Source: Amphiscolops sp. MND2022 (taxonomy: Eukaryota). From it: a DNA stretch of 64,000 nucleotides. Below the pieces are notes generated by a model. The model saw only the letters and a program-made list of their open reading frames with translations. It was not told the DNA's origin and did not search any database. Both the position numbers and the translations under genes were made by a program. The stretch spans positions 58,776,001 through 58,840,000 of the forward strand of contig OZ076410.1 in assembly GCA_964187785.1 (NCBI GenBank), in the 5' to 3' direction. Within the stretch, counting starts at the first letter, position 1. Each line of letters opens with the position of its first letter. This document shows positions 5,201 to 29,644 of this stretch, one piece after another.

Positions 5201-5942
5201 TTGGTCATGATGTTGGTTTTCGAGACAGACTAGTGTTTTCAGCAGTGTCGGGTCATTTGTAGTTTCGTTCATTAGTAGCTGCAAATCCGTTGAGAAGTTT
5301 CTTTCTGTTTCTCTTACGGCTTGTGCTAGATCCCAATTGTTTTCCTTTTGTGCTGCAATTTTCGGGGCGTGTCCCATTTTTACGTATTGCACGCTTTTCA
5401 CCCCTACATAAGATGCCCAGTTTATTGCGGGAACTTCGAGGATTGACGGGTCTAGGGTCGTCGCTGACTCGATTTCGCCTTCCTCCATTGGCGTAGGGGC
5501 GAATGGCTTTTGGCCCGGTAAGGCTGACGATGGGCCGGGTCGATTTTTTTCGACGGTCCATTGTTCAGATCTTCTGGTGTGGGTTTGGAATCCTCCGCTG
5601 TGTTGCGGACCAATTTGCTGTCTCAGGTCGCCTTGTTCTCGCCCCTTTATGGTTTGTTGTAATCTTTCTTCGATTACTTTTCGCTCGTTTCGTAAAAATT
5701 TTGGTTCGTGGTTTTTTTCCACTTCCCTCCGGTCATTCGTTAGATGCCGGGTTTAACGAGTTCTTTCCATCGGTGGATTAATTGAGTTGTTTCGGCGGAA
5801 AAGTCTACTGCTGCTAAATTGTCAAAGGTTTTGACGTCCATTTTGGTTTCAATATCGATTGGTATAAGGCGTGTTAACGTTGAGTTGTTAAGGCAATCAA
5901 TGGAAGTTTGCTTATGTGTGTCTTGCGGCCGTGATTTGTTAT

Positions 5943-6836: not shown

Positions 6837-6843
6837 TTCTTTT

Positions 6844-7545
6844 TTAGTGTTGTTCCTTCGAACATTTTGTTACGATGATAAGGTCATCTAACCATGCTGG
6901 GTGTTTATTTTCCAGTGTCTGGTCGATCTTTTCCTGGAATATGGTCGGTATATCCGCTAAACCGTAAAATCTTTTCAGGAAACGGTAGTAACCGGTGAAG
7001 TCGCCTCCGGTTACGGCAAAGATGCATAGGTTCCGTGCTTCTTTGGATAGGGTTAACTGGCCGTAAGCGTAATCCAAGTCAAGTTTTGAGGTCCAGATTT
7101 CGTCTCCTGGGCCGTCCGCAATTTTTCTGGAAATTCTGGAGATTAATTCTTCCATGTTCGGCATTTGAGTCTTTCTTTTTATGGTAATTTTGTTGAGTTT
7201 TTGCGAATCTAATGCGATCTTTACCGACTTATCTTTTTTTACTGTGATTACAGCCGGGCTAACGAAACAATTTTCGTCAATGTTATTTGCTTTTTCGATG
7301 TGTCCTTGTCTCATCAGTTTATTTATTTCTTTTCCGACCGATTGCTGTAAATGGATCGGTATTGGCCTTCCCTTTTGTGGTATCATTTTGGCACCGTCTT
7401 TAAGCTGTATTTTCACTTCGATTCTGTTTACAGTGTGGTTTTCGTTGAACAGTTTTTTGAATCTTCTTTTTAGTGTGGTTATATCCGGATCCTCGGTTAT
7501 ATTGTTTGTTTGTGGACCGATCTTTCCGGTGTCCAGTTTTTCCAT
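6844..7545 (-). pseudogene. Gypsy reverse transcriptase core
   Basis: GRPIPIHLQ, FVSPAVITVKKDKSVKIALD, SKLDLDYAYGQ, YGLADIPTIFQ; the catalytic motif reads WLDD. Confidence 0.92.
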
Positions 7546-7808
7546 CCACCCAGTTTTTCCATCCAGTCCAAACCTAAAAGGGGATTGGTGTTCTTTGTGG
7601 TTAACAGTATTTCAAGGTTGTTTCTTTCACCGTTTATTTCTACGGAGGCGGTTGTTTTTCCTTCAAATTTTATCCGGTTGTCATTCACGTCTCTGTATGT
7701 GGTTCCGATTGGCCTTGATTGTGTTATTCTGTTGAATTGTGATTTTGGAATTAAGGTTACCGGTGAACCGCTATCGATTATGAATTTGATTGGTCGGTTG
7801 TTCACCAA
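7497..7808 (-). pseudogene. Gypsy aspartic protease
   Basis: IIDSGSPVTLIP active-site motif and LLGLDWMEKL. Confidence 0.88.
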
Positions 7809-8800
7809 AACATTGGGCGGTGATGATGAAGAATTCCGGACCGTTCCTCTTGATTTGGCCTGTCGAATGGACCTTTTGGTTTACTGAATGGATCGTGTTC
7901 GGTGACCAATCATCGTCTTCCGCGCTGCTTGCCACATCATATTGTATGTGGTTTATTTTTTTGTTTGTTCTGCAATATTTTGCGTAGTGTCCAATTTTCT
8001 CGCATTTTGCGCACTTCTTTTCTTTAGCTGGGCATTCGTGTTGTCTTGTCCAGTTGGGTGCTCCGCATATGTTGAAATTTAGTTTCTCGAATTTTGTTGG
8101 TTTTTCCGACACTTCTTTTGTACCTTTTATTTTCTTTTTATTAAGGTATCTAATTTTCTTCTCTTCTTCTGTTTCTGGTGAGTCATTTAATTTTTCGTAC
8201 ATGTATTCATGTAATGCATCCGTTATTGCCTCGATTGACATGTCACTTTTTCTGATCTTCTTTTTGAGATCATAGTTGCCCGTTGATTTCCCAATCACGG
8301 ATAGGAATTTTGATGCTAAAAGTTCTGCTGCGGTTATTGTTTCAAATTCGCAGTTTTTCTCGACTTCTAGTATTCGTTTCCATACATCCGCCGCGGATTC
8401 TCCGTCTTCCCGTTTTAGGTCAAAGAAGTCGCTCTGCTGTGATGGACGTTTCTCTCCGGTGTGAAATGTAGTCGAAACAGTGTGTATAGTTTATATAACG
8501 GTAGTGAGCTTGGTTCTCTATCTCTAACCGTTTTGGTCACTTCCGTGATTGCGTTTTGTCCAATCGCCCATAGGAATATGTCCTTTATCTCCATTTCCAA
8601 TTGGTCACCGTATTGTGGTAGTATTTCTTTGTTGTTGTCATCTTTGAAAGATCCAGATCCTTGGTCATCTTTATATATTTTACGAACTTCCGCCACCACA
8701 TGTTGGCGTTGGTGTAATTTTGTTTTTCCAATGTTGGGATGGTAAATTTCTATGTGCACGTCCGTTCATTGGTTCTGTTTAGAGTATCGTTTGGTAACGG
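7771..8800 (-). pseudogene. Gypsy gag with zinc knuckles (frameshifted)
   Basis: Helical capsid-like region followed by (C)NICGAPNWTRQHEC and CAKCEKIGHYAKYC knuckles; lies between the PBS and the protease. Confidence 0.75.
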
Positions 8801-10514: not shown

Positions 10515-10680
10515 AGAGCCTTTGTTTTTCCTCTGTTTTTCCTTGATACATCTGAACCAGCCGAAATAGTTCCACAAACTTTTCAATTTTGGCAGAGTCT
10601 CTTTGGACTATCAACATGCTGCATTTAAATTGTAAAAACTGCTAAAGGGTTTCCTTCACAATAACGACAAGAAAATACAA

Positions 10681-10985
10681 TGTTGCGTTGGCAATAAGAT
10701 TGAAATAATTTTATCTAATTTTTCTTCGAAATAACTTCATGAAATCTGAAATACATAGTAAAAATTATGTTTTTGGAAATATCAGAAAGTTGTTTCTTTG
10801 CTATCTCGAAATCATGACTCATATTTGTTCATGTGTTTTATTGGTTTCTTTAAAAAGTATGCGAGATTCAGTTGTTGAATTATCTACCCATATTTTGTTT
10901 ACTCTCATTAAAACATTCTCTAGACTACGAACTTTTCCAAATAGAAGAAACGAGATATAATTTTCGCCAAGTTATATTCTTTTTA
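10681..10985 (+). repeat. BEL-outer 5' LTR
   Basis: Starts TGTTGCG; direct repeat of 27691-27993; followed by the PBS TGGTGGTCATAGAGAGG. Confidence 0.93.
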
Positions 10986-11002
10986 TGGTGGTCATAGAGA
11001 GG
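10986..11002 (+). promoter_or_regulatory. BEL-outer primer-binding site
   Basis: TGGTGGTCATAGAGAGG adjoins the LTR and shares CATAGAGAGG with the BEL-inner PBS. Confidence 0.75.
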
Positions 11003-11997
11003 CAAGTCGTCTACGTCTAGCAACAATACTTCTGACCCCAAGAGATCCTCAAGCAAAACGCCGAGTAGTAGCCCAAGAATCAGGAAAGCGGCTACTTCGT
11101 CATCACAAGGTGCTGGTGATTCGCAAGGGGGGTCACCCTTAGTTCCAAACGAGTCCCCCGAACTAGTTGTCCCGATATCAATCAAGAAGGAGCCATCCTC
11201 CTTGGCTGACAGTCTGAAGCCTGGAACCTCAAACATTGCTTCGACGACAGTAGTGGACCCCGGTACTGCGTCCGGGCATGTGAAAGCAAGCGATGTCGAC
11301 TTAGGCGAAGACCCCACCACCACTGAAGAGCTGCGCAGAAGGAGAGTTGTGAAGTTACAATCTCCAATTTCTCTCTCTAAAGACTTCGCTGATATGTTGC
11401 CCAGAACAGAGAATACTGCTGCTGAGTCCAGTAGCAGGTGTGCACAGATTCACGACATTTTCCATATCGCTTTTGAATGCATTACTGTCGGATGAAAGCA
11501 CCTGATTTTGCGGAGTGTTCAGAAGGTTTTCTTTCGAAAACTATTTTTTAAAATGTTAATATGATAACTTCAAAATATGGACTAAAATTTGTACTTCCTG
11601 CTGTGCTAATACTTCGAGATAGCGAATTCAGATTTGGAACGTAAAACAAAAGGTAAATTTTAACGATTCGAAAAAAACTTTCATCTGTGCTATAAAATTA
11701 GATATTTCGAGCTAGCAAGATTTAAAAAAATTAATTCCAGTTATTGAGTTTTTCCAAACACATTAAAAAAACTTTCCGAGTGGTTGAATAGTGAAACAGA
11801 AAAAAACCACGAGTTTTAAAAAAATCTTGAATAGTTCAATTTGCGCAAAGTATTGTTAAAAAAAACATCAGGATTTTTGTATCGCATATTCAAAGTAACC
11901 TTGTTTCCAAATTTAAAAAAACAATTGTTGCACCCGCGCTTTGGTGATCGTAAAAAAAGACTGAGTGTTCGATACTTTAATGTGAAAAAAAACACGC

Positions 11998-12033
11998 ATG
12001 GTATTCATCGTACCTGCTAGCTCTTTACACCAT
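11998..12033 (+). pseudogene. First 12 codons of the BEL-outer SGNH-hydrolase-like accessory ORF (MVFIVPASSLHH)
   Basis: Removing BEL-inner and one TSD copy joins it in frame to 20603. Matches MVFILGASSLHH of the BEL-inner ORF. Confidence 0.85.
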
Positions 12034-12348
12034 TGAAAATCTTTAGAGAACTAAAGTTTGTATTACCAATCAAAATTAGAATAACAATGAAAGTTGAGGA
12101 AAGCTATTATTATTAACCGCCAAGTCGAAATTTGATCACACAAACATGACTCATTTTATGATGTGCATAGCAAGGCCTTTTCGAGAGTTTTTTTTACCGA
12201 AATCGGAGAAATATTTCCAAAATATAAAATATTTTGCATAACCGGGAATCGAACCCACGCCGGTCAAATACCGGCCTTGTATTCTACCGCTAAGCCAAGC
12301 TGCCTTATTATTTGTTTGTTTTAAATTAACGATATTGCTACCGCAACA
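12034..12348 (-). repeat. BEL-inner 3' LTR
   Basis: TGTTGCGG...TTTTCA on the minus strand; direct repeat of 20277-20597. Confidence 0.95.
12235..12303 (-). promoter_or_regulatory. tRNA-Gly-like segment with Pol III A and B boxes inside the LTR
   Basis: GCAGCTTGGCTTAGCGGTAGAATAC...GTGGGTTCGATTCCCGGTTATGCA; A box TGGCTTAGCGG, B box GGTTCGATTCC; the anticodon arm is replaced by a CCGGT-ATTTG-ACCGG hairpin. Confidence 0.7.
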
Positions 12349-12499
12349 CCCTCCGGGCGCAAGAAGATGAATGTTTTATAGTGCAAAAAAAATTCTTTAA
12401 AAATGTTTTGTGAAACATGTTTTTACATGAAAATTAATTTTTTCATACATGTTGATACATGAAGCATAAATGAAGGAATTGGAGGAAACAGAACATTGT

Positions 12500-13911
12500 T
12501 TATTCGGGAAGGGGAAGGACGGGAGCGAGTTTGATCACTGGGCGAACAAGGTTACCAGATGCTGTTCTGACTTCAGCGGACCTGGCGACGGCGTCTGTGC
12601 CGAAGTTAAGCTTTACGACACGAGCTAGTGGATAGTGCCCTCTAGGTGAGGTCGGTTCAACAATCCACACGAGATCTCCGGTTTTCAGATCTCTGTTTGA
12701 ATGCGATGACCACTTCGAACGGCAGTTCAGAATGGGAACGTATTTTCTTAACCACCTGCTCCATACTATGTCGGAATAAGCTTGCGCTTGAGTGTAACGT
12801 TTGCGATGGTCGACGTCTGCTTGCTGATGCGAAGACAGTACTGAACCTGAAGTTCCATGTAGAAAATGGTTTGGAGTTAAGGCGTCCAAATAGGTCGCAT
12901 CTGCACTAGCAGGCACTAACGGTCGTGCATTCAAATTTTGTTCCACGAGGCAGAACGTGGTTGCAAGAATTTCGTCTGTCAGTCGTCTATTTCCGAGGAC
13001 AGCGTAGAACACGTGCCTAAAACTACGTACTAAACGTTCCCAAACACCTCCATGGTGAGGAGCACTGGGTGGGTTAAATTTCCACTTGATTCCTTTCTTG
13101 ACAAGTGATTCAGCCAAAACTTGCTGATTCCAGTCTCTGACGTTCAGTAATAGTTCTTTGTCACTCGCAATAAAGTTGGTGCCGTTCTCTGACCAGAGAA
13201 CTGATGGAGTGCCTCGTCGGGCAGCGAATCGTTCAATTCCCATCACACAACTACTAGTGTCCATTGAAGGCACAACTTCAAAATGGACGGCTCGAGTAGT
13301 CAGACAAGTGAAAAGGAATCCCCAGCGTTTCTCAGTAGAACGTTTCACGGACACGTAGAAGGGACCAAAGTAGTCGATTCCTGTGTTGCGGAATGGAGGT
13401 TCTCTGTATGCAAGTCTTTCTCGGGAAAATTGGACATCATGGGAGCTAACGTCTCAGCCTTGCGCTTGCGACAGGTGTTGCACCTGGATACAATTGATCT
13501 CAAGGTTGGTCTCAATTTGACGATTTCGTATTGTTGCTGGATGAAAGCCCTCAAGTATTCAACACCCTGGTGGCATTGATTGATATGAAAGTTCTTCAGG
13601 AACAACCGAACTAAGGGATGACGGCTATCTATCAGAATTGGGTGTTTCATGTCGAATGAAGCAACATCCAGCTGTTTTGTGCGACCAGAAGCTCGCAGTA
13701 AACCATTAGGTCCAATGAAAGGGGAAAATTCAACAATTTTAGAAGACTTGCTGAGGGGGAGTGACTTCAACAAGCATTTCTTTTCAGTGTTAGAGGACTC
13801 GAGTTGTACCAGATGGAACAATCTCTGTTGGGCATTGTCGAGTTCAGTTGGATCTGTAATAAATCCATTGTCGGTGCGCTTGGATTCGTTCTTTGGGAGG
13901 AGTCTCAACAT
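12500..13911 (-). pseudogene. BEL-inner integrase region
   Basis: HQGVEYL...CNTC zinc finger, TGIDYFGPF, FTCLTTRAVHFE, NPPSAPHHGGVWERLV, GHYPLARVV. Confidence 0.92.
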
Positions 13912-14060
13912 GTAAGCTACAATGAGCAGAAGCTTCTCGCATGAACTGTACTTCTGCCATTTGAAAGTTGTTGCAATTTCGGTTACTGTTGCGGTGATTG
14001 TAGTACACTGATGTTCTTTGGTTTCGTTAACTTCAGTGGAATGAGCGCCTTTGTTAAGCT

Positions 14061-15169
14061 TTACTTTCTGACGAAATTCTTTGTTTGGGCGATGTTTGGA
14101 TTTGTCCCTCTGCTAACTACTAAGGTGTCTGTTGAGTGATTCCATTTCAGTCCAAGAACGTGTGAGAATTTCTCTGCAGTTGGAATTTCTTTCTCTTCCG
14201 TGGTTCTATTGTCGCTGCTCGGATCCACTTCGATGGGGATGCTTGGTTTAATAGACACAAACTTTGTCAGTTTAAACCCTCCCAAAGCAAGAATTTTAAC
14301 AAGATCCTTCGATTTGTTTGAGGCTTCGATAGCTGTTGGATTTGATTCGAGGAATCCGTCCATATAAAAGTTGTTGTGAACGCTTCGTGCTGCATCTGGA
14401 AAGTTGGCATGGTTATCTGTAGCAGTTCGTTTCAATGCGTAGTTAGCGCATGTTGGCGAATCTTTGGAGCCCAAAATATGCCGAACATACTCAAAAACAG
14501 CAACTACAGCTGCTGGGTGTTCCCGCCACAAAAATCGAAGTGATGGTCTGTCACGTGGGATAACTCCAACTTGGAGAAACATTCTTTCGATATCTGCAGA
14601 TACAGCAAAAAGATATTGACGGAAACGGAAAATAATGTGGATTAGGCTCTGTAGCAAATCTGGTCCTGCTAGAAGAGCAGTGTTCAAGGACTGACCATGA
14701 AATTTTGCGGCTCCATTAAGAACCCTTCGTACTTTGCCAGGCTTGTGAGGATGCACGACTGGATGGTGCGGTAAATACGATTCACGGGCTGGTCTACTTT
14801 AAAAAAGTCAGTTTTTTCTACTCGAACAATATAGCCTTTCGAGAAATCATTGCTAATTGTTTTCGCGTAGCTGTCTTTTAAATCGGTGTCCTTTTGAAGA
14901 CGGCGCTCTAGCGATTTCAGTTGAACGAGTGCAGAAAAGTAATTGTTTGGTAAACAACTTTCGTCATCGGCCCACAACTTACCAACTTGGTATCGGGACC
15001 CATCATGGTATGTTGTTCCATCAAGTATCTTCGTCGCTCTCGCGTCGGTTGCGGAACGGGAGTCCACTTGTTTGTACGAGCCATACGCTTCAATGTCGAA
15101 CCAGCTTCGGAGTCGGTCGGAGAGTGTACAATCGTGCTCTTTTTGGGTAACAGCTTTGAAACATGTCAA
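14061..15169 (-). pseudogene. BEL-inner reverse transcriptase; RNase H region deleted downstream
   Basis: KPGKVRRVLNGAAK, GPDLLQSL, VSADIERMFLQV, DSPTCANYAL, FYMDG. Near 14085 the sequence jumps directly to the post-RNase H linker. Confidence 0.9.
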
Positions 15170-15201
15170 AAACAGACCCGTGGTCGACGGAAGGGGTCCA
15201 C

Positions 15202-18200
15202 TCAGTACCCAGCCAACGGTAAACGGACGGCAACTGGGGTGTTTCGGCGGTCGGATTCGAAATACTCCAGTGGGCAGATAGCGTGGAAAACGTCCTGACC
15301 AAGAATCATTTTCACATTTGTGTAGCTGTACTTGCTAAGAGCGATTGGTTCTAAGTGTGGATAGCGAGTCTTCAAATCATCTACGTCAATCACATCATTT
15401 CCAATAGTCAATTGATCTCGCACATAAGATTTGACAGTAAAGGAGGAGCAAGAGCCACCCCAATGAACCGGTGTTAACTTGAGCTCGACCATTTGAGTGT
15501 CAACAACCTTATTGGAGTTAATTCCGTGTACGGTCAACTTAGTCGGCGTTCCGCGCACGTCAAGTTTGTGAGCTAGTTCAGAAGAAATCCAAGAATGACT
15601 ACACGCTGAGTCGCACAAAACCAATACCCTCTCAGATTTCTCTGAAGTTTGAAATTCTACTTCGGTTATTTGTAACAATCCTTTCACATCCGAGACGGAA
15701 GGGAGGCATGAGGTGACTTCGTCTTTCTTTTGGGTCGCTGTTGTTACGCTACAAGTAGTGGTTTCACCATTGCTCGCTCTCACAGATTCAGATTTTCTCA
15801 AGAAAATCTTCTCTGCACCATGTAGCAAAGTGTTGTGCGTACTTCCACAGCCATCTTTGGTGCATTTGCGTGGTTGTGGGCAATTGCGGAAAACGTCTTG
15901 TCCATTGAAGCATGAGAAACAAACAACAACTTTCGCTCGTTCTGTTGGAGTCTTCTTTTTGAACATCTGACATCGCCACAACAGAAGCTTATCTTTGCAA
16001 ACTACACAATTAACTTGGAATTTCTGGGTTGACGGCTTGGTTGTGATGGTATTTTTAGTAGAAGGTGTTGTTGCAGCGAACACCTTAGAATTGGTCTTGG
16101 TTTTCGTTACGTTTCCGGTTGGAGTTTCTTCAACTTTTGCTTTTCCAGTGGCAGCTTTCATCCTCTCGTGAGCTTCAGCTTTGTCCTTCAGCCAATCATT
16201 GCAGTCAATCAGAGTCGGTCGGTTCAAATCCCGCTTAACTGTATGCATTGACCACCCTTCTTTCAAGTTCGAGGGAAGCTTTTGAACCGCTTGACCGAGC
16301 AGAGAAGCACTCGAAAGATCTTGAACGTAGTTCAGAGATCGGAAAACACCAACCAAAGAGCAAATTGTAGCTGCATAACTTATGATGCTTTCGCTGTTAT
16401 GCGTTTTCACTGGAGGAACATTCGTTAATTTGTCTAAGTAGGCACTGACCACAGTCTGTGGTTGGCCGACTTTCCGTTCAAAGGTCTTCAGTGCGTCCTT
16501 GTACATTGTCCCGCAATATGCAAACTCAGCAATCGCTGTTTTGGCTTTTCCAGTAACAAGTGTTTTCAGGTAAGTAAGCTTCACGTCGTCTGTAAGTGAA
16601 GACGAATCAATGGCACTCTTGAACTGGCCAAACCATTCATGCCATTGAAGAGGGTCGCCATTAAACTGTGCTAGTTTCCACTCAGGGAGATGGTCTTTCT
16701 TCGTCGAAGTCAAAATCTGTGCAAGGTCTTGCAATGTGAAACTATTTGCAGACGGTTGTGGCAAAGTAAACGAACTTGCAGGTACAAAAGGAGGGGCAGT
16801 AACACTGGGAAACGTTGTTACAGTTTGAGGTACACTACAGTTTGTTGTCGATGTTACCAGGGCAGTCGGCTGCACGTAGTAAACAGTTCCTCCATTCGTT
16901 ATGGGAAAAACTTGTGCTGTAGATAAGACACTATTGTTGGATGGAATGACTGTGGGTAAGCTGGTAGCGGGGGATGGCACTACAGAGGTGGTGACTGCTG
17001 ATTGGTGGAAAGATTTGGAAACCGGAAAACTCCAGGTTGACAAGTTAGGTAAAATGTAATTTACGGGAAGTGTGACTATCGGATTAGGTCGAGGCTGAGC
17101 TATTATCGGTGCTGAAGCGATACTTACTGAAGGACGAGAATGTTGCAAAGTGCTAGCATTGTTCAAAAACAAACCAGTAGCAGCGGAGTTAGTAGCGGTT
17201 AAACTAGTTTGACCGCGGAAACGCGGAAGCTGGCCAGGTAAACCAGCAAACGTGTTGGTGGGGTGGTTCAAAGACTCAGTTGTTGTAAGCGACAGTGGAG
17301 CCGTACCTGTGGTGTTTTCCGTTTGGAGCGGAATACTATTTTGCACCGTAACAAATGTAGGTGCTGAAACAGTAGCGTTTTCATCTGATGGAGATGCAGC
17401 TTCGGGCAATGGTTGCGTACCAACTGTCTGTTCCTGATTCGATTCAACAACGGGTGCTCCAGGGGCACGTTCATTGGTTGCTGATATCAAAGTGGGGGGT
17501 TGACTGATGTTTGTGGCTCTCCTCACTCAACAGTGATAGCGTCTCCTGGAATTCTTCATTTGTCGCCGACAGATCATCTTGAAGTTCTAATTCAATCAGT
17601 GTTGCCTCAGCCAGATTTTTGCGGTTCTCTTCCTGCACCTCGGCGACTCTAAGTGCAAGTTCTTCCTTGAGACGCTCTTTTTCTTGCTGCATTCGTTTGA
17701 TTTCAAGATCTTGCTTTTGCTGAGTCAGTCGGAGTGCAGCTTTGTTTTGCTTCTCAATCTCTTCACGTCTTTGTTTTGCAAAGAGTAGCTCTTTCTGCCG
17801 TTGACTTGACGTCTTTGATCGAAGAGAGCTTGAAACTTTACTGGACTTTGTCTTGTTCGTCGATGGAACTATTGAAGCTTGCGAAGCGTTGTCGGGTTGC
17901 AGACATTTCTCCAGATAATCGCGAGCCTTCGTCAGTATTTCATCGTTTCTGACAGCAACGTCGTTTAACCACTTTTCCAAGTCCGGCTTCACTGACTCTG
18001 GGTTGGTTGATTTGTTGGCTAAGTCTAGGAGTTGTTCGTTTTTTGCAAAAGATTTAGTCATAGCTTCCTCACACCAGGTGATTAATTGATCAACGCGAAC
18101 ACGTCGTTCGGCATTTCCAATGGCGTCATTGAGCCTTTGTTGGATCTTGTTGAGCTGCGCTTCAGCTTTTGCCCGACTGTCGTGTAGTTTGGAGACTTTC

Positions 18201-18250
18201 TTTTGCATCGTGTCAGCCATTATAAGTGTTTTCTCAACTTTTTGGATCAA
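15202..18250 (-). pseudogene. BEL-inner gag and protease (one frameshift near 17500)
   Basis: Coiled-coil N-terminus; LPEWKLAQFNGDPLQWHEWF (BEL gag DUF1759-like); three Cys/His knuckle remnants; VLCDSACSHSW protease motif. Confidence 0.92.
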
Positions 18251-18330
18251 TGTAGTGTGTTATCAGGACACGGATTGTAGTGTTTCCAGCACTAAATTAT
18301 GTTCAAAACAGCAGAATTACTTACAGAACA

Positions 18331-18661
18331 TCAACCAGACAACTAAGTCCGGACACAATTCTGAAAATTAACTATGCGGTTGTCAATTAAGGGAAATTCT
18401 AGAGTGACAGTTCAAAAGAAGATACTAGTACAAAATGTTGCGGAGGATGTTGCGTCGGAATGACATTTAATTTGTTTGTTTTGGTTTAAAAATAGGCACT
18501 AAGGAACTACGAGGACGGTATAAGACAAGAGTAATGAAGAACACGCAGTTATGGTATTGAAACGGTCGTTTTGATCGTCAACCGGACAGTCAAGTCCGGA
18601 CACAGTCCAAAACTCGGAGGAAAGTTGTTGCGACTTCAACCTGACAATGAAGTCTGGACAC
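18331..18661 (-). promoter_or_regulatory. Three conserved stem-loops between the accessory ORF and gag (BEL-inner)
   Basis: GTGT-CCRGAC-N6-GTCHGG-TTGA at 18636-18661, 18578-18603 and 18331-18356. Confidence 0.7.
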
Positions 18662-19296
18662 TGTCACAACAACAGTCTTTTGGAGAGGAAGAAACTTCAC
18701 TCTGATTTGAAGCAGCGTTCTTCAAAGCCATACGGGCACGTTTACTTGGTCGCTTAGGGTGACTTTTGGCTGTAATCTGCGCTAGATCTGTTTCTTTTCG
18801 GAGATTGATGTCCAATTACTTGAGCTCAAACTCAGGTCTTTGGTGTATTGCCTTCAATTCGTTCAAAATTTCTGGATCATTTTGTTTTCTTGTCGAAAAG
18901 AAATCGGTTTCAATTCGGGAAACAGGAATGCTTTGCGTTTTTAGAATATCAGAAATGTCGGGTGTTCGAATTCGGTGGCAATACACAAGAGCCCGTAGTT
19001 TGTTTTCTAGAGGTTTCAAAATTGCTAGCAACTCAGAAACAGACACTGCTCAAAAATTGTTGCTTTTATGTTCTGACAAGCTATTATTCAGCACATCATG
19101 CCAGATAACAATCTCAGTTTCTTTCAGCGAAATCTTTTTGCAACAAATTTTGAACAACTTTTTGTGGGTTTTTTGCGTGATTATTCAAACTAAGGCCCGT
19201 TATTGTGTAAATTTTTTTCTAGGAGGTGTTTCTTTTTTCAGGGGTTAATATATCAAGAGCATGATGCAACGAGCTCGCACCCAAAATAAACACCAT
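18636..19296 (-). pseudogene. BEL-inner SGNH/GDSL-hydrolase-like accessory ORF upstream of gag
   Basis: ATG at 19296: MVFILGASSLHHAL...IYTITGLSLN...IVIWHDVLNNS...ALVYCHR...LKAIHQRPEFELK...PKRPSKRAR. Three in-frame stops and one frameshift. Colinear homolog in BEL-outer. Confidence 0.8.
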
Positions 19297-20259
19297 TACA
19301 TTTTAAAATATAATAAATTCATTTTACACAGCGCAGAAGGCAAAAAATTTCGCTCAGAAGGAAGTTTTTTAGGATCGAATCAACTTCTAATAATGATAAG
19401 AATGTTAGGTAATATTACCGAATTTTCACAAAGGCCTTGCTATGAAGGAAGCACCAAATCGATAGCTTTGAAAGTTTTTTTTTTCAAACCGGTTTTAAAA
19501 ATACCAGTTAGTTGTAGTAGTCGGGTTTGAAGGTCACTCTTTCTGAATTGAGATCAATGTTCTTCCTTTTCCGGGATCAAGTGCGGGTTCACCTTTGGGG
19601 GTGCCGTGGATTTCCTCGTCTTTCTGTGGGTAGGTGACCCTCAATTGTGGGTGGAATCACCCTCAACTGCGGGGGGGGGCTTTCTCGACTGTGGTTCCTT
19701 TGTCCGGGTTCCGTCGTCGTCCGAGCTTGTGGGGGGGGCACTTTCCTGGGTTTCGGGGAACACCGGCGGAGCTTCGGTTTTTGGCAACAGTAATTCTCTG
19801 TAATTCCGGATTCAAAGATTGGAGACTTTTTTCAATCGCAACTAAATAGTCTGCAAACTACCGCTATAGTCTTCTCACGTGGCGGGCTTCCTTGCTTCAT
19901 ATTGTAGTTGTAACAATTTGACTTCTTTAATTTGCCACGGGGTAAAGCAAGTTCTGACAATTTTATGGTTATGCCTCCACAATTGACATTACCATTTATT
20001 ATTAACGAGAATTACCTTTACATATAAGAGATTACAGCTACTAGTTGTGGAACGTAAATGAAAGGAACAGCAGATTAAGAAAGCTTCATTCTTTGTTCTA
20101 GCTAGCTGCGCCTTTGTATAAGTTACTGGATAAATTCATGCAATGTAAATCCCAGAGCGGACGAAGTGGAACGACGGCATAAATCCAATGACTTTCTCTA
20201 AAGAAGCGGCGAAATCGTTCTTTGTTTAATCAATGACAGAATTTAGAGTTTCTTTCGTG

Positions 20260-20276
20260 CCTCTCTATGGCCCACA
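20260..20276 (-). promoter_or_regulatory. BEL-inner primer-binding site
   Basis: TGTGGGCCATAGAGAGG directly after the 5' LTR end TTTTCA. Confidence 0.75.
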
Positions 20277-20597
20277 TGAAAATCTTTAGAGAACTAAAGT
20301 TTTTATTATCAATCAAAATAAGAATAACAATGAAAGTTGAGGAAAATTATTATTATTAACCGCCAAGTCAAAACTTGATCACACAAACATTAAAAATGAC
20401 CCATTTTATGATATGAATAGCAAGGCCTTTTCGAGAGTATTTTTACCAAAATCGGAGAAATATTTCCAAAATATAGAATATTTTGCATGTCCGGGAATCG
20501 AACCCACGCCGGTCAAATACCGGCCTTGTATTCTACCGCTAAGCCAAGCTGCCTTAATACTTGTTTGTTTTAAATTAACGATATTGCTACCGCAACA
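20277..20597 (-). repeat. BEL-inner 5' LTR
   Basis: Second LTR copy with a 7-bp insertion; flanked by TSD ACCAT. Confidence 0.95.
20484..20552 (-). promoter_or_regulatory. tRNA-Gly-like A/B-box segment in the 5' LTR
   Basis: Core identical to 12242-12303. Confidence 0.7.
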
Positions 20598-20602
20598 ACC
20601 AT

Positions 20603-21230
20603 GCTTTTGAAACTTTAACCCTGGAAGAAAAAACTCGTTATAAAAATAAAATCTATTCTATCTCCGGCCTGAGCTTGAACCCAAATACAAAAAATCCTCA
20701 AAAAGTCGGTCAAAACGTGCTTGCAAAGGATCTCAAAGAGAAAAAAGACATAGTTATTTGGCATGACGTTTTGAAAAACAGTATTTAACGTCATGATAGT
20801 AACAATTTGCAAGCCTTGACTGTGCCGCAATTGATTGATGTGCTTAAAGGCCTCCTAGAAAAACTCAGTGCTCTGGTGTATTGCCAACGTTTTCAAACGC
20901 CATACATTTTTGATGCTTTGAATGTTTTGAAAACCGACCATAACCTTGAAGTTTTCAGCACCGTGAAAGATTTCATTTCGTCAAAAAAAAGTATCGGAAA
21001 CTTTGAAACAATACAAGGCTTTACACCAAAATCCTGAGCTTGAATTGAAACGTCTTGACTTCATCTTGCGTAAAGAGAGTCAACTTTCGACCATCACTGA
21101 CAAATGCCGTCCCAAGAGGCCTAGTAAGCGTGCCCGAAACGCTATCAAAAAGGCATCTTTGTATCCTTTGCAGTAAAACCCCGTTTCTCTTCACTGTGGA
21201 GACAGTGTCCAGACTTCACTGTCTGGTTGA
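20603..21230 (+). pseudogene. Remainder of the BEL-outer SGNH-hydrolase-like accessory ORF
   Basis: AFETL...KIYSISGLSLN...IVIWHDVLKNS...ALVYCQR...(fs)YKALHQNPELELKRLD...PKRPSKRAR. Confidence 0.8.
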
Positions 21231-21568
21231 AGATTCCACAGGGCGTTGCGCTGTTTCAGAGTTGTGTCCAGACGTACTTGTCTGGTTGATACTCTGTAAA
21301 CTTAATCAACCATTCCTTTCAATTTAATAACGGGGTCCAAGTTTTGTTGATTGGTTTATATTGCGGTTGCAATATGACTCAAACTTTTTTCAATTACTAG
21401 GAATAGGTTTCGATTGATATTCCGGGCCCACAATTCATTCCTTCCTATAGTTACTTTTAACAATCAATTGTTTTAGAGTTTTAGACTTTTTTGTTTAGTT
21501 TATGATTTTAAAATTCAGTTTTCGTCTCTCACTGTTAGATTAGTGTCCGGACTTGATTGTCCGGTGGT
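21205..21568 (+). promoter_or_regulatory. Three conserved stem-loops between the accessory ORF and gag (BEL-outer)
   Basis: GTGT-CCRGAC-N6-GTCYGG at 21205-21230, 21264-21289 and 21543-21568. Confidence 0.7.
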
Positions 21569-21735
21569 AATCCTGACAGTCCTGCTCCTTGAACTGCATC
21601 TCAGACTCAGATCGCCTTTTAATACGCATCATTCAGATCTTTGTCGTAGTCCGTGAGCACTTTTCAACCCAAAACAAACCAATTCGTTTGTTTGTCCGAC
21701 CCGTCCCATTATTTGTCACTTAGACTATTGGCGCT

Positions 21736-24359
21736 GTGTCCAAACTTCCGACAAAGTCCAATGATCCGGCAATGACAACTGCAGACCTTGAGAAATGGTT
21801 AGGTGACGTTACTGCGGAAAATGATGAACTCCTGACGGAAACAAGGGGCCATATTGATCAATGCCTAGAACAGGACAAAATTTCCCAGAGTTCGCGTCAG
21901 ACAACTACCGTTAGAAGTAAGTCCAGCAAAGCTACCAGCTCTGAAATATCAAAGACTTCTAGTCAATGGCAACGCGATCTCATAATCGCTCAACAACGAC
22001 GTGAAGAGATTGAGAGACAGAACGAAGCAACCTTACACCTGGCGAAGCAGAAACAAGAGCTCGAACTTGAACAGCAAGAACTAGAACTGCAGAAATTGCG
22101 AAAGGAACAGGCGTTAAGGGTTGAAGAACTAGAAGAAAATCGCCGGAAATTAGAATAAGCCACCTTAGTTGAAATGGAATTTCGAGAAGACTTGTCGGAA
22201 TCTAATGCTGACATTAACGAAAGCTTATCACGCTTGGTCGCTTCAAGCGAAGGAAATGAGGCAGCGAGGATTGATGACTGGGTCCACAACTCCCCCAGCG
22301 GAGCCCAAACAGAGATGCAGCCCAGCATTGGAGCGCAAGTCACAATAGCCCCAACTGACACCCTCGAAGCCCAACCAACACCTCAAAGTTTCCCCTCTGA
22401 AATTTTCGCCTCTGCTCCGGCAGCAGATCAACCAAGAATACCGGAAGTGAATCCCACGACGTTCACTCAAAAATCGACTATCCAAAACCAAGTTTTGCTG
22501 CCGCCGCCGCCACCTTCTGTACTTTTTAACCCATCACTCACAGTGCCAGTGAGCCATATACTTCCGAACATGTCTGCCTGGACAATCTCAACTGCACTCA
22601 ACAACCATTCCACACAACCAAGCCTACCTTTACCGTCAAGCCAACTGATTCAAGTGACAACAACGAATGCAACATCGAGTAGTGCTCCGGCCCAGCCAGT
22701 GTCAGTCATGCCCGTTACTTGTAGAGAAACAGTTTATTACGTTCCGCACCTAGTTGTTACAACACCAGCCGTTGGCGGTACGACGACTCAACCATCATCT
22801 TGGTTGACAAGAGTGAGCGCCGCTCCCTTTGTTCCACCTTCTCTTAACGCAGCACCGCCTACGAGCTCTGCAAGTTTACCGATATCTGAAGTCGCACAAC
22901 TGATAGCGTCAAATAAGAAAGATCATCTACCAGAGATTAATCTGTCTCAGTACAGCGGAGATCCTGTTCAATGGCACGAGTGGTTCGAGACAGTTCAAGA
23001 GCGCAATTGACTCTGCTCCTCTGTCAGATGACGTCAAGCTGACCTACCTGAAGACTTTGGTTACCGGAAAGGCCAAAGTCGCCATAGCCGAGTTTGCCTA
23101 CTGTGGGGCTATGTACAAAGATGCACTCCAGACGCTTGAGAGTAAGTTTGGGCAACCCCAAGCAGTAGTGACTTCATATTTGGACAAACTGGCCAACGTT
23201 CCACCTGTACAAATTTACAATAGTGATAGTATCATTAGCTATTCCGCAACAAAAAGTTCGCTGGTTGGTATCTTCCGGTCCCTTGATTATAACCAAGACT
23301 TGTCAAGTGCATCCCTACTCGGTCAAGCCGTACAAAAGCTTCCACCAAAATGAAAGAAGCATGGTTGATGCACACGGTGAAGCACAACTTGGACCGACCT
23401 ACTCTAATCGACTTCAATGACTGGTTGAAAGAAAAGACCGAAGCCCACAAACGAATGAAAACATCTTCGATTAAGCCCAAAGTGGACGAAAATGCGCAAT
23501 CAAAAGTCACGAAAACGAAGACAAAATCAAAAGTTTTTGCCTCAACATCATCAACCAACGAACGAAAGACCAAACAAAAGTCGGACAATCTATCAATCAA
23601 TTGTGTAGCCTGCAGAGAAAAACACCCTCTGAGGAGATGTCAACTCTTCCGAAAGAAAATACCCACAGAGAGAGTGAAATTAGTTGCCGAAAACAAAGTT
23701 TACTTCTCTTGTTTGAACGCCGACGATTCGTTTCGACAGTGACCACAGCCACGTAAATGTACAAAAGAAGGATGTGGAAGCTCCCACAACACATTGCTCT
23801 ACGGAGCCGACGGAATTCTCCCGCAAAAGAACGATACTTCTAACAAACGGAAACCAGGAACGTCGACCAGCATCGAAACAACAGAAACAAAGAAACAGGT
23901 CAAAGTAAGTTTGGGTTTAGCTTCCGTGACCACTTTTAAAGGTCTTTTACAAATTACAGAAGTTGAGTTGCCTTCTCCTGGGGAGTCGAAGAAAGTTTTA
24001 GCTCTTTGCGACTCAGCCTGTAGCCATACTTGGATTTCCGCAAGCTTGGCTAGCAAACTGAAAGTCCACGGAATACCGATAAAACTGATCGTTCTAGAGA
24101 TCAACTCCCAGCAAGTAGTTGATACGCAAATGGTAGAACACAAGTTGACACCGGTTCATTCGGGTGGCTCTTGTTCTCCCTTTCAACCAAACCTTACGTG
24201 CGAGACAACCTCGACGTAGGCACCGATGCTATCGACGTGGACCGTATGAAAACCAAGTATCCTCACTTAGATCCAGTACCTTCACACAAGTACAGTTACG
24301 CCGACGTTGACATGATTCTGGGTCGGGACGTGTTTCACTTTATCCACCCGCTGGAGTAA
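21736..24359 (+). pseudogene. BEL-outer gag and protease (multiple stops and frameshifts)
   Basis: KKDHLPEINLSQYSGDPVQWHEW, GKAKVAIAEFAYCG, CVACREKHPL, ALCDSACSHTW; colinear with BEL-inner. Confidence 0.9.
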
Positions 24360-24439
24360 TTTGATTCCGACTGCAATAATGCTCCAGTTGCCGTCCGTCT
24401 TCCGTTGGGCTGGGTATTAAGTGGACCTCTTGCAGCGAC

Positions 24440-26684
24440 TTGTTCTCAACGTCCTTCAAGGCTGCTACGAGTAATGAAGACACTGACTCCGAGCTCGTCG
24501 ACCATCTCCGCAGCTGGTATGATATGGAATCATACGGAGCGATGAAACAAGTGGACTCCCGTTCCGCAGCCGACGCGAGAGCGGAGAACATCCTTGTTGA
24601 AACAACTTACCACGATTGGACTCGGTATCAAGTGGGTATGCTATGGGCTGACGATGAAAGTAGTTTGCCGAACAACTATTTTTTGGCTCTCGTTCAGCTG
24701 GAATCTTTAGAACGCCGTCTAGGGAAAGACGTTGATTTGAGAAAAAGATACTCAAAAAACATCCAAGTCGACATTTCGAAAGGTTATATAGTGCGCGTTG
24801 ACAAGACTGACTGCTTCGAAGTGTGTAACCCCCATGAATGGTATCTCCCGCACCACATGGTCATCCATCCGAACAAACCAGGTAAAGTTCGACGAGTGCT
24901 GAATAGCGCGGCCAAATTTCAAAGCTCTTCCTTGAACAATGCATGTTTAACGGGACCAGATCTACTACAAAGCCTCATTCATATCCTGATTCGATTTCGA
25001 TAATACCCGTACGCTGTGTCTGCGGACATTGAAGGAATGTTTCTCGAAGTTAGGGTCATTCCAGACGACAGGCTGTCACTTCGTTTCTTGTGGCACGAGG
25101 ACCCAGCTGCAGAAGTTGCTGTGTTCCAGTACGTTCGCCATATCTTGGATCCAAAGACTTTCCCACCTGTGCGAACTAAGCCCTGAGACGAGCAGCGACT
25201 GAAAATGCATCGCAGTTCTCCAAAGCCGCCCAAAGCGTCATCAACAACTTCTACATGGATGACTACCTAGAATCCAGCCCAACCATTGAAGAATCTGCCC
25301 GAAAAGCTAAAGATCTGGTGCAATTGCTTTCACTAGGTTGTTTCAAACTGACAAAGTTCGTCTCGAAGGTGCGTAATATTCCGCCACAAGTAGAAACCGA
25401 CTCCAAAACACCAACTGAGACAAAAGAAATACCGAGCACCGAAGAATCGTCACATGTGTTGGGATTAAAGTGGAACCACAGTAGCGACACCCTTGTAGTC
25501 GTGGTACGAACCCTGGAGTCAAGGCGAAAGTAACTCAAATAATCGTTTAAAGTTTAGTTTCTTTAGTGTACGATCAGATCGGACTTTTTGCGCCGTATAC
25601 CGTCAAAGCACGACTACTGCTAAAAGAGATCTGGAGGTTAAGTTGACAACAATGGGATGACGACTTACCGCCGGAAGTTGTATCCAAGTTCCTTGACTAG
25701 AGTGAAGAACTACCAAGGCTTAGCGACATAGTAATTCCACGAGCTTATTTCCAGGGAAAAATCGACACGTTGGAACTTCACCTATTTGGCGATAGTTCAC
25801 AAGATGTGTTCAGCGCTGTCGCTTTCCTACGTGTCAAGGTTGTCAGAAAAGAAAATCAAGAACAAACACAACTCGCCGTCGTATTTGGGAAAACCAGAGT
25901 GGCACCCATGAAAGCCCTGACAACCCCAAAACTTGAACTACAGGCCCCGTTACTTGCAGCAAGGCTTCGAAAAGAAGTTGAGAAAGCACTGACGCTGGAG
26001 ATAAACAAGACTTTTGTGTGGTCCGACAGTACAACTGTCTTCCAGTGGATACATTCTCTGGGCAAACAGCCAGACTTCATTGCGAACCGCGTGGCGGGGA
26101 TTTTGGATCTTACCACGACCATCGACGAGTGGAATTACGTTAAATCCAGTGAAAACCCTGCCGATGCAGGCACACGAGGCCTGTCAGGAACAAGATTGTT
26201 AGACAGTAGTTGGCTCAAAGAACTGGAGTTTTTGAAAACGTCCGACTTGCCATTCAAGTCATCAGAACTTTCAAAATTTAAACTGAAACCTGACATTAAC
26301 GATCAGAATGCAGAAAAGCTTTCCCCGAAAAATGAGGCTGCTCTCGGTTCCAATGCAGACATCAACACATCAATTTTCGAGTGGCATAAGTATACTTCTT
26401 TCGAGAAACTTTTGGGTGTTCTTGCCTACTTGATGCGTCTCATACCAATACATGAGACCTACCGCTCCGAGACGGGTACCATCACGGATCCAAGTGAACT
26501 TGAGAATGCACAAACGAAGCTTTTCTATCTGGTACAACTAGAATCATTCCTCATAGAAAAGAAGCTACTGCTGAAGAACTGCCTGCTCCGCGGTTTCTCT
26601 AAAATACTACTCCCCTTTCATTTGACCCAAAGGTTTACTTCGAGCAACTGGCAGAACGAAGCAACTCGACGTATCTACTTTTGA
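24440..26684 (+). pseudogene. BEL-outer RT and RNase H
   Basis: WYLPHH...KPGKVRRV, GPDLLQSL, YMDDYLES, LHLFGDSSQ, KTRVAPMK...PKLELQA, WSDSTTV, NPADAGTRG. Confidence 0.92.
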
Positions 26685-27543
26685 CGCGAAACATCCCGTC
26701 CTACTGGACAGTCGCCATCCAGTTTTACGTTTCTTCCTCGAACATTTACACAAGTCTCATTGCCATCAGGGTGTGGACTACTTGAAGGCGTTGGTGCAGC
26801 AACAGTTCGCCATCGTCAAGCTTAGAACCACCTTAAGATCAATAGTTGCGAGATGTGTAACTTGTCGCAACGTCCAGCTGAGACTATCAGTTCGATGATG
26901 TCTGATTTTCCACAAGAAAGACTTGCCTTCAAGGAGCCGCCGTTTAACAACACTGGCATTAGACTGTGCCCCTCACCATGGAGGCATCTGGAAACGAGTG
27001 GTTGGAAGTGTCAAACACGTTTTCTACGGAGTTCTCGGGAACAGACGTCTAATTGACGAGATCTTGACAACAACATTTTGCCTTGTTGAGCAAAGTCTGA
27101 ATGCTCGACCGTTAGTACCATCTAGCTCTGATGCCACTGATTTGGACGCTCTGACTCCCAACCATTTTTTGCTAGGAACTGCGGGCTCCGTTTTACCATC
27201 GCATCGGAGTGCTGAAGTTGACTATCGAAAACGTTATGTGCGTGCACAAGCATATTCTGATGATATATGGCAACAAAGGTTGAAAGAATATGTTCCTTCA
27301 CTTAATAGACGTTCGAAATGGTCCAGCCCGCCGGAGAGACAACTTAAGAGCGGAGATCTAGTTTGGATCGTCGATCCAACTAGTCCCAGAGGACATTACC
27401 CACTAGCCCGAGTTGTTACGTTGAATTTCGGCAGCGATGCCGTAGCACGTTCTGCAGGAGTAAAGACCAGTACCGGTTGTCTTGTTCGCCCCGTCGTGAT
27501 GTTATGCCCCGTCCTACCAGCACCTGATCCCGAATACTTTTAG
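26685..27543 (+). pseudogene. BEL-outer integrase with an internal deletion of the core
   Basis: HCHQG...CVTC finger. NTGI is joined almost directly to APHHGGIW near 26962, losing roughly 300 bp present in BEL-inner. Confidence 0.85.
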
Positions 27544-27690
27544 GTTCAATGCCCGCTTCCAAAAAGTATATAACATTTAACATGTAATCTGAACATCTAT
27601 GTAAACCGTTTTTTTGTGTATTTGAAAAGAAAAGGTTTTTCCTTTTTCGTTTGGAACAAAAAAAGTTTTCATCTTCTTGGGCTCGGAGGA

Positions 27691-27993
27691 TGTTGCGTTC
27701 GCAATAAGATTGAAATAATTTTATTTAATATTTCTTCGAATTAACTTCATGAAATCTGAAATACATAGTAAAAATTATGCTTTTGGAAATATCAGAAAGT
27801 TGTTTCTTTGCTATCTCGAAATCATGACTCATATTTGTTCATGTTTTATTGGTTTCTTTAAAAAGTATGCGAGATTCAGTTGTTGAATTATCAGCCCATT
27901 ATTTACTTACTCTCTTTAAAACATTTTCTAGACTACGAAAATTTCCAAATAGAAGAAACGAGGTATAATTTTCGCCAAGTTATATTCTTTTCA
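27691..27993 (+). repeat. BEL-outer 3' LTR
   Basis: Preceded by the PPT CTTCTTGGGCTCGGAGGA; ends TTCA followed by TSD TACAA. Confidence 0.93.
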
Positions 27994-29644
27994 TACAAAA
28001 TCGTTTGAAGCCAAAGTTTCCTTACTTTGATTTTTTTTTCAGTATTTTGAGACTTTATTTTAAAAACGTTTCCTCCTCTTTTCCAACTTAACCCAACATT
28101 TGTTCTATTCTCGATCCTTTTTCATACTTTGGTTTGATTTCTTTATGAGGAGGCGCGAAGTGACATCATAAATTAACAAAATTATTCAGAAAAAGAGGAA
28201 AACATTCAACGTAAATTGTGCAATTTTACGTTACCACAGGCAATGTTTGAACTGGCAAACCCTTTGAAAAATCCCTTTGTATACAAGTTATAACTTATAT
28301 AACTGGTAAACCGGATACAACGTTCACCGGATATTACGTTTTGGAGAAGTTTACTTTCCATTTTCTGGCTAATTTTCCAATTCATCAAACACTGGTAATG
28401 GCGTCATTGCCACAGATACTGGCAATGGCGTCTGGCAACAGTTCTACAACAGCGGTTCTGTTCACAATATCAGATGTTAGACTAATGAGGAGACTTTTTG
28501 GATTTTTTCAAAACTTGTCTATCTCCGAAATTTTTTGTGTCAATTTTTTCTCCTCTCAAAATTTCGATCTTTTCTATTCATGCGGTCGCTTGGAAACCCC
28601 TTTCATGATTCATAGTTAGCGATTTGCTCAAAAAAGGGTCCACCGTTCAATTTTTAGGATATTTAGAGTTGGTACAGAATCATTTGAAGATAAAAAGTAT
28701 AGCCTATAGATTTGTTAGGCGCAAACCGGGATTAACGCAAACCGGATATGGCGAATAGCGGATACAACGTATACCGGGTATAACTTTTCTTGGAGACTTT
28801 TTTGATACTTTTTGATACCTTTTTACACTCGACACTCCTGGTCAGAGGAAGGACAAAGAATCAAAACCAGATATATTTCCAAAAAGTTGCAAGAAAGAGA
28901 TCAGTTACTCGAAAAGTAACATCGTCAAAGAACAGACGAGAATGAAAGCTGGGACGTGTTACAGCGCAATCAAGAGGAAACGTGTGTGTGTGTGTGTTGT
29001 CTGGAGAAGAAACAACAATAACAATGAACAGAACAGAAAAAAGCAATGATGCGACAACCGAGGAGAGCAAGCAAAGGAGCGACGCGCGTGAAGTAGATGA
29101 GCAGGCAAATTCGGGGCAGAGGTAGAATCTGAGAAAATCGCTAATCCTGAGAAGTGAGCATAACGGAAAATAGCAGAACCCTAACCCCTGGAGCAGGTGG
29201 AAGAAATATCTGCATAGGAATAGACAATAAAAGTGCTTGTGGTGTGGTAACGACCAGAAATTCGTCGAAGAAAACCGGTAGAATTTTATGCAATAGTTGT
29301 CGTAATGAAAGTGAAAGAAGCAAATCAGACGGAGAAGAAAGAATGAGTAAACTGAGTAGCAAATAATCTGAAACTTCATCATGTCTTATAATCTGAAATG
29401 AATTAACCCAGTGTATTACTTAGCATCTAAATCGGAAAAAGAAAAACATAACACATTCTACAGTATACTTTATTCATTATACATAATACATCACACGTTA
29501 TACATTGAACGTACCATTGAACATTATACATTATCATTGTAATTGGAAACCTCACGTTTTGTCTGAAAACGGGGAGTGTAGTAGTATGACTTTGACTGAT
29601 GTACCACTATGACGCTAAAAAGCATGCTTTTCATATTACCATAA

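Follow-up and report, generated by a model that had tools for sequence, protein, structure and literature searches.

A predicted SGNH-fold protein encoded ahead of gag in BEL/Pao retrotransposons of Amphiscolops and ahead of ORF1 in LINEs

Published surveys of BEL/Pao elements, a group of long terminal repeat (LTR) retrotransposons, describe gag, pol and an occasional env only (PMC3118150). What, then, is the additional open reading frame (ORF) that stands ahead of gag in each of two BEL/Pao elements in the genome of Amphiscolops sp. MND2022? The two elements lie one inside the other within a stretch of 64,000 nucleotides (contig OZ076410.1, positions 58,776,001 to 58,840,000 of the forward strand; hereafter the window, numbered from its first letter), and the original prediction, made from the letters of the window, was that this ORF is an accessory gene related to SGNH/GDSL hydrolases. 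We call it ORF0. The stretch holds decayed copies of a stand-alone cistron of about 200-220 codons, which BEL/Pao elements carry between the primer-binding site and gag and long interspersed nuclear elements (LINEs) carry ahead of ORF1. On the evidence given below, ORF0 is probably a genuine retroelement gene, the 5'-most cistron of BEL/Pao elements and LINEs, which encodes a protein of SGNH fold that is most likely an esterase or a binding factor derived from one.

The first step is to establish that ORF0 is a gene at all, given that neither copy in the window is intact. Six-frame translation reproduced every one of the protein blocks that had been listed as common to the two copies. The inner copy, on the reverse strand, is interrupted by in-frame stops at 19221-19219 (TAG), 19052-19050 (TGA) and 18818-18816 (TAA) and by a frameshift near 19117-19125, and it reaches its natural stop at 18638-18636. 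The outer copy, on the forward strand, has an in-frame TAA (20786-20788) and, near 20967-21034, a frameshift, and the inner element has inserted into it and split it. The proposed start of this split ORF and its resumption at 20603 both proved exact, as the reading frame runs on at that very position once the insertion and one copy of the ACCAT duplication are removed; its end had been placed at 21230 and has to be moved, the natural stop by homology being 21174-21176. A profile of the ORF0 family matches all of these pieces, with E-values from 4.9e-26 to 1.4e-6, and has no other match in the window. Similarity to gag begins 416 nt past the ORF0 stop in the inner element and 569 nt past it, at gag residue 67, in the outer element.

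Evidence that ORF0 has been maintained as a gene comes from its relatives in the same genome (1.07 Gb), which we searched using two stop-free pieces of the ORF as queries. Each piece returned more than 1,500 first-look candidates; all 150 of the 150 that were scored were significant, and most of them lay in open frames of 200-230 codons, so that many uninterrupted copies exist. BEL gag was found downstream on the same strand in 60 of the 60 loci fetched, and the spacer between ORF0 and gag in uninterrupted relatives measures about 410-450 nt in the type represented by the inner copy (inner type) and about 660-680 nt in that of the outer copy (outer type). Among 37 uninterrupted copies, the ratio of nonsynonymous to synonymous substitution (dN/dS) was 0.26 for pairs of inner-type copies, 0.18 for pairs of outer-type copies and 0.10 for mixed pairs, with every pair below 1; only intact copies entered these comparisons, in which the pairs are not independent. 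The original inference of selection on the ORF is thus borne out in this genome. So is its linkage to BEL gag-pol, which extends to members in other assemblies that are described below. All further work on the protein used natural uninterrupted copies, not those of the window.

Two simpler accounts of ORF0 were considered and rejected. A chance ORF is ruled out by the copy number, the selection and the profile matches, and ORF0 cannot be the N-terminal part of gag, because 0.2-0.7 kb with stops in all frames lies between the two. As a separate observation, a frame of about 115-150 codons is open on the antisense strand opposite inner-type ORF0 in many copies from this genome (L032-L057; in the window, 18766-19248 on the forward strand), and may be a by-product of codon usage.

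What kind of protein this gene encodes was approached through its predicted structure. AlphaFold2 (AF2) models were made from a natural inner-type copy with 20 relatives (model 1; predicted local distance difference test, pLDDT, 83.8; predicted template modelling score, pTM, 0.75) and from a LINE-linked member with 45 other relatives (model 2; pLDDT 94.4, pTM 0.84). Both predicted models have the SGNH architecture of three alpha/beta/alpha layers with five parallel strands, and in model 1 the strands and helices succeed one another as in a five-stranded alpha/beta domain, behind which come helices and a tail that is disordered. When each model was compared exhaustively with 48,161 chains of the PDB using VIA-align, the top 50 chains were all SGNH/GDSL proteins. 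The best matches of model 1 were OatA (6vjp) and an acetyl-xylan esterase (7ddy), with Z 10.6 and 139-155 residues aligned at 3.2-3.8 A, while that of model 2 was 3p94_A (Z 10.9, 153 residues aligned, root-mean-square deviation 3.5 A). Foldseek led to the same protein, 3p94, with E 3e-4 for model 1 and 4e-5 for model 2, and structure searches of AlphaFold DB and the ESM Atlas also agree with an SGNH fold. Two independent predictions therefore favor the SGNH-like fold first suggested from the window's two damaged copies.

The residues that are conserved fit this fold to a considerable extent. Conservation was scored in 87 full-length proteins, each representing a cluster at 50% identity, and these have about 30% identity to the reference copy. 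S8, conserved in 90% (78/87), lies within G6-A7-S8-S9-L10 directly after strand 1 (residues 3-6), as does the nucleophilic Ser of SGNH block I, with the Asp of G-D-S replaced by Ala. G34 (89%, 77/87) occupies the place of the oxyanion Gly of block II, in (P/S)-G-L-S-x-N after strand 2. Strand 3 is followed by W65-H66-D67-x-x-N70-N71, in which the first three residues are conserved in 91-95%, N70 in 82% (71/87) and N71 in 91% (79/87). Toward the C-terminus, H151 (93%, 81/87) is followed by P or Q, as in D-x-x-H-P; H76 (85%) and E157 (86%) are also conserved. The conserved Ser, Gly, Asn-Asn and His (82-93%) hence run in SGNH order, after matching strands, and the span from Ser to His is 143 residues, versus 144 in one of the genome's own canonical GDSL esterases. 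The mapping proposed at the outset, namely G-A-S, G, HD..NN and a His without its Asp, therefore coincides with conserved positions in 87 divergent relatives, and the basic tail noted in the two window copies recurs throughout the family. The predicted SGNH-fold domain begins at residue 1 and is followed by a helical segment and then by the lysine/arginine-rich tail, with no N-terminal coiled coil. Inner-type ORF0 has in addition a Cys-rich C-terminal extension with a C-C-C or C-C motif behind the basic tail (final 20 residues; window 18639-18700, reverse strand), which is absent from the outer type and from most relatives.

Several results weigh against placing ORF0 in the SGNH/GDSL hydrolase superfamily (Pfam clan CL0264). 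No Pfam GDSL model (PF13472, PF00657 or similar) matched any of 40 members, even at E<=1, and the same Pfam GDSL model does detect canonical esterases in this genome. Comparison of the family with those canonical esterases by hhalign gave a probability of 3% locally and nothing globally. Within the motifs, the stand-in for the Asn of block III is ambiguous among D67, N70 and N71, and the D-x-x-H of block V is missing along with the triad Asp: the position three residues before H151 is K, R, Q, A or S, never a conserved Asp, and an acidic residue at -5 from H151 is present in 46 of 87 representatives. Since Pfam and profile-profile comparison were both negative, the case for SGNH homology is made by the predicted structure and the order of the motifs, and by these only. 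The remaining sequence searches were likewise uninformative, as Pfam gave only sub-threshold noise (TPR_ZFYVE26 and similar) for two natural copies and the 40 members, a profile search of PDB sequences returned nothing meaningful, and the closest database proteins are unnamed. We file ORF0 as a protein of predicted SGNH fold with SGNH-like motifs, and not as an SGNH member demonstrated by sequence criteria.

The missing Asp bears directly on the most serious alternative, in which ORF0 encodes a catalytically dead SGNH-like scaffold that binds RNA or ribonucleoprotein (RNP) or docks other proteins, as the OSK domain of Oskar does, with the basic tail binding nucleic acid. The OSK domain (5a4a) is indeed among the structural matches (Z 8.1), block III is atypical, the lysine/arginine-rich tail is universal in the family, and for LINE esterase ORF1 proteins, which have no other RNA-binding domains, RNA binding via basic peptides has been proposed (PMC3905857). 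We nonetheless regard a dead scaffold as rather unlikely, given that Ser, Gly, Asn and His are so well conserved across clusters of about 30% identity, which would be unusual for a pseudo-enzyme, and that OSK has lost those same catalytic residues. Ser-His dyads without an Asp do occur among SGNH enzymes.

A second alternative questions the fold itself. The structural match could be one between generic three-layer alpha/beta proteins of flavodoxin-like type, with W-H-D, H76 and H151 forming some other active site, such as that of a metal-dependent phosphoesterase. TM-scores of just 0.45-0.53, the lack of a sequence-level tie to GDSL families and a conservation peak at W65-H66-D67, which is no SGNH motif, are all compatible with this. 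It becomes improbable, however, when 50 of the 50 best VIA-align matches are SGNH proteins for either model and other alpha/beta folds rank lower, and when the Ser, Gly, Asn and His keep SGNH order, matching strands and an equal overall span.

If ORF0 is a gene of BEL/Pao elements with a protein of SGNH fold, is it theirs alone? A profile search of 1.84 billion representatives revealed a family of 864 clusters (50% identity) at E<=1e-3, or 548 at E<=1e-10, whose members are stand-alone proteins of about 200 aa with a basic tail. We looked up the genomic context of twelve members. Three belong to BEL/Pao elements: P0197 in L079, where ORF0 begins 267 nt past one of two identical 246-bp LTRs and precedes a gag-pol with DUF1759, Pao peptidase, rve and DUF5641, P0130 in L080, and P0124 in L086. 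These come from other assemblies and are 34-38% identical to the window's ORF0 type. Five belong to LINEs with an APE endonuclease and a reverse transcriptase (P0267 in L083, P0186 in L084, P0248 in L085, P0213 in L088 and P0172 in L087). Of the remaining four, three stand beside decayed reverse-transcriptase remnants or nothing, and one is on very short contigs. In the LINEs, ORF0 is the 5'-most ORF and is followed by a second ORF and then by the APE endonuclease and reverse transcriptase. LINE-linked members, 30-40% identical, are present both in this genome and elsewhere; those of this genome, found with P0213 as query, are 38-41% identical to its BEL-linked type. Here ORF0 precedes one of two kinds of ORF1: in L090, L091 and L094 this ORF1 contains a PHD finger and a CCHC knuckle and is followed by APE, and in L092, L093 and L095 it is of coiled-coil type.

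The family tree has 97 rows, and one group of 53 rows (Shimodaira-Hasegawa-like approximate likelihood ratio test, SH-aLRT, 91) contains nine LINE-linked rows and no BEL-linked row; the window's own ORF0 belongs to a 12-row clade with support 100. To account for the BEL and LINE labels, the tree requires two changes or more, although well-supported branches force only one, the deep nodes being weak. The ORF0 family is one accessory module common to BEL/Pao elements and LINEs and is not BEL-specific, and since it forms the first ORF of both, it must have moved between retroelement classes at least once. That ORF0 is instead a host gene fragment lately captured by a single BEL family, with no role in the life cycle, is highly improbable and already contradicted: capture of host sequence by LTR elements does happen, but ORF0 keeps the same position in BEL elements whose copies are as little as 34-38% identical and in other assemblies, is under purifying selection, is also the first ORF of LINEs, and has no stand-alone cellular homologue among the database matches. 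One of the LINE-linked contigs, L087, is flagged circular at 1.38x coverage and carries tandem units of about 5 kb, each with ORF0 and ORFs of 245 and 237 aa, the final unit having an endonuclease ORF; this array may consist of tandem LINE 5' parts or be an assembly artefact.

A separate cistron at the 5' end raises the question of how the genes behind it are translated, and the scarcity of ATG in and after ORF0 suggests an answer. Internal Met makes up 49 of 17,720 residues (0.28%) and is absent from 59 of the 87 proteins; in the ORFs just downstream it makes up 1.45%. Out-of-frame ATGs within ORF0 numbered 30 at 14 loci, where codon shuffles gave an expectation of 67, and several elements, LINE and BEL alike, have none or one. 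In the spacer, taken from the stop of ORF0 up to the first ATG of the long ORF that follows, 17 were observed at 12 loci and 70 expected; in L083, no ATG occurs across the approximately 760 nt that separate the start of ORF0 from the start of the next ORF. The pattern points to selection that favors leaky scanning, or else re-initiation with no starts in between. Two observations on the window's own subfamilies run counter to this. Although in-frame and spacer ATGs are depleted there too, out-of-frame ATGs are not (4-7 observed, 5-7 expected), and the leaders, 0.7-1.0 kb in length, still hold 7-9 ATGs, so that simple cap-dependent leaky scanning may not apply. The translation mechanism in these subfamilies may be different or mixed.

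Taken together, we propose that the ORF0 protein would be translated from the full-length element RNA, and that the near-absence of AUG in ORF0 and the spacer would let some scanning ribosomes reach the start of gag or ORF1, by leaky scanning or by re-initiation. The predicted protein is most likely a Ser-His esterase, or else a lipid- or membrane-binding factor derived from an esterase, and its basic tail could tie it to the element RNA or RNP or direct nuclear entry, on the analogy of CR1/L2 elements and their esterase ORF1 proteins. Catalysis, substrate, the role of the tail and the mode of translation are matters that we only infer. A bolder version, in which ORF0 is a mobile cassette encoding a Ser-His esterase that is active and has a tail for targeting RNA or the nucleus, repeatedly exchanged between LINEs and BEL elements, required for propagation in one animal group and built as an AUG-free first cistron, is one that we put forward tentatively and consider doubtful as a whole.

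The elements that carry ORF0 in the window were delimited by direct repeats, Pfam domains and junction sequences (Table 1). Both have LTRs with a target duplication and, between them, remains of DUF1759, Peptidase_A17, Integrase_H2C2 and DUF5641, as expected of BEL/Pao elements. The two had been described as having dissimilar LTRs, and rightly so, as the 58% identity between inner and outer LTRs is at the level of chance (58.8% for shuffled sequence). Their LTR termini are nevertheless similar, with a common start of TGTTGCG.T.GCAATA, and the primer-binding-site-like sequences are nearly identical (core CATAGAGAGGC) despite the unrelated LTR bodies. BEL/Pao elements are hugely abundant genome-wide, with more than 11,000 first-look candidates for DUF1759 gag and more than 6,000 for Pao peptidase, and many of their gag-pol frames are uninterrupted, at about 1,700 codons. 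The window also contains a third retroelement remnant, Ty3/gypsy-like, at 3277-8298 on the reverse strand (RT_RNaseH_2, E 1e-31, at 5943-6836; rve at 4216-4830).

Table 1. Features of the two nested BEL/Pao elements, in window coordinates
Feature	Position	Strand	Basis or remark
Outer BEL/Pao element	10681-27993	+	LTRs, target duplication
Target-site duplication TACAA, outer element	10676-10680 and 27994-27998		junction sequences
Outer 5' LTR (TGTTGCG...TTTTTA)	10681-10985	+	93.8% identity to 3' LTR
Outer 3' LTR	27691-27993	+	direct repeat
Outer primer-binding-site-like sequence	10986-11003	+	begins TGG, abuts LTR
Outer pre-gag ORF, 12 initial codons (MVFIVPASSLHH)	11998-12033	+	interrupted by inner-element insertion
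Outer pre-gag ORF of predicted SGNH fold, remainder	20603-21176	+	1 in-frame stop, 1 frameshift
Outer gag-pol, decayed	21736-27543	+	Peptidase_A17 25770-26684, DUF5641 26923-27543
Inner BEL/Pao element	12034-20597	-	sits within outer pre-gag ORF
Target duplication ACCAT (5 bp), inner element	12029-12033 and 20598-20602		junction sequences
Inner 5' LTR	20277-20597	-	92.3% identity to 3' LTR
Inner 3' LTR	12034-12351	-	direct repeat
Inner primer-binding-site-like sequence	20259-20276	-	junction sequences
Inner pre-gag ORF of predicted SGNH fold	18636-19296	-	~219 codons, 3 in-frame stops, 1 frameshift
Inner gag-pol, decayed	12500-18250	-	DUF1759 gag, aspartic protease, Integrase_H2C2, DUF5641; gag start ~18220

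Canonical esterases also accompany retroelements in this genome. At two loci (L073:1054-2607, reverse strand, and L078:535-1806, forward strand), a canonical GDSL esterase (PF13472, E 7e-12; G-D-S, G-T-N-D and D-G-I-H-P) lies downstream of an integrase (rve and Integrase_p58_C) in one frame, from which it follows that this genome has a Ty3/gypsy-type pol with an esterase domain at its end, a third retroelement context of SGNH domains here. In addition, L075, L076 and L077 contain multi-copy ORFs of about 300 aa in which the N-terminal part is helical and a canonical GDSL domain is present (PF13472, E 5e-9); they look like classical esterase-type LINE ORF1 proteins and exist alongside the divergent ORF0 family.

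Esterase-type proteins are an unexplained accessory of CR1/L2 LINEs and of rotifer LTR elements, and ORF0 places such a protein in BEL/Pao elements, at their 5' end. Within a single genome, one divergent family serves both LTR elements that form virus-like particles and LINEs that are target-primed. Because these two classes are mechanistically different, the role of ORF0 is probably independent of the mechanism of integration and may concern the host interface, membranes or RNP transport. ORF0 should also be an easy experimental system, as the small protein looks soluble and offers clear targets at Ser and His, and the AUG-poor bicistronic 5' region makes the mechanism of translation directly testable. 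More than 800 protein clusters that are blank in current domain libraries are now flagged.

How does ORF0 compare with systems already described? Its arrangement has formal parallels in other groups: 5' accessory ORFs occur as ORF1 of plant Ogre elements and as orfC of walleye dermal sarcoma virus, which like ORF0 are extra cistrons between the 5' LTR and gag, and in rice tungro bacilliform virus AUG-poor upstream cistrons let ribosomes scan to downstream ORFs, as we propose for ORF0. The proteins are unrelated in each case, and to our knowledge none of these examples is found in BEL/Pao elements or LINEs. Our literature search turned up neither an SGNH-like ORF ahead of gag in BEL/Pao elements nor a stand-alone esterase-like ORF ahead of LINE ORF1; Repbase and Dfam lay outside this search, and a prior annotation of the pre-gag ORF there is possible.

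Where the protein is concerned, the closest parallel is the type IV ORF1 protein (ORF1p) of CR1, L2 and RTEX LINEs, for example ZfL2-1, which also puts a retroelement SGNH-fold domain upstream of the polymerase gene, and some ORF0 members are themselves carried by LINEs. The esterase ORF1 proteins of CR1/L2 LINEs carry, behind a coiled coil, an SGNH domain that is canonical and catalytically active, and they bind acidic phospholipids (PMC3905857; PMC4120745). The top template reported for the L2 esterase, 3p94_A (PMC4120745, table), is also the best solved structural match of ORF0. Type IV ORF1p, however, is detectable with GDSL profiles, has the full Ser-Asp-His triad and carries its domain behind a coiled coil or zinc finger, whereas ORF0 is invisible to Pfam, has no Asp, starts its domain at residue 1 and ends in a basic tail. 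Moreover, the type IV esterase lies within ORF1p, the sole ORF ahead of ORF2, whereas ORF0 is a separate cistron that in LINEs precedes a distinct PHD+CCHC or coiled-coil ORF1 and is also present in BEL/Pao elements.

Bdelloid rotifers provide the nearest case among LTR retrotransposons. In Vesta, a canonical GDSL ORF3 lies downstream of pol and is common to Athena elements (PMC5408684), so that the GDSL ORF3 of Vesta, Athena and Terminon, like ORF0, is an extra SGNH-type ORF common to unrelated classes. The rotifer ORF3 retains canonical catalytic residues and belongs to Ty3/gypsy-like elements, whereas ORF0 is far more divergent and sits upstream of gag in BEL/Pao elements. The OSK domain of Drosophila Oskar (5a4a) shares the SGNH-like fold and acts in RNP biology, but as a pseudo-esterase without the catalytic residues, in contrast to ORF0 with its Ser, Gly, Asn and His. 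The kind, a retroelement esterase shared between classes, is thus already known, but the same does not hold for the ORF0 family itself, for its position or carriers, or for its AUG-poor design.

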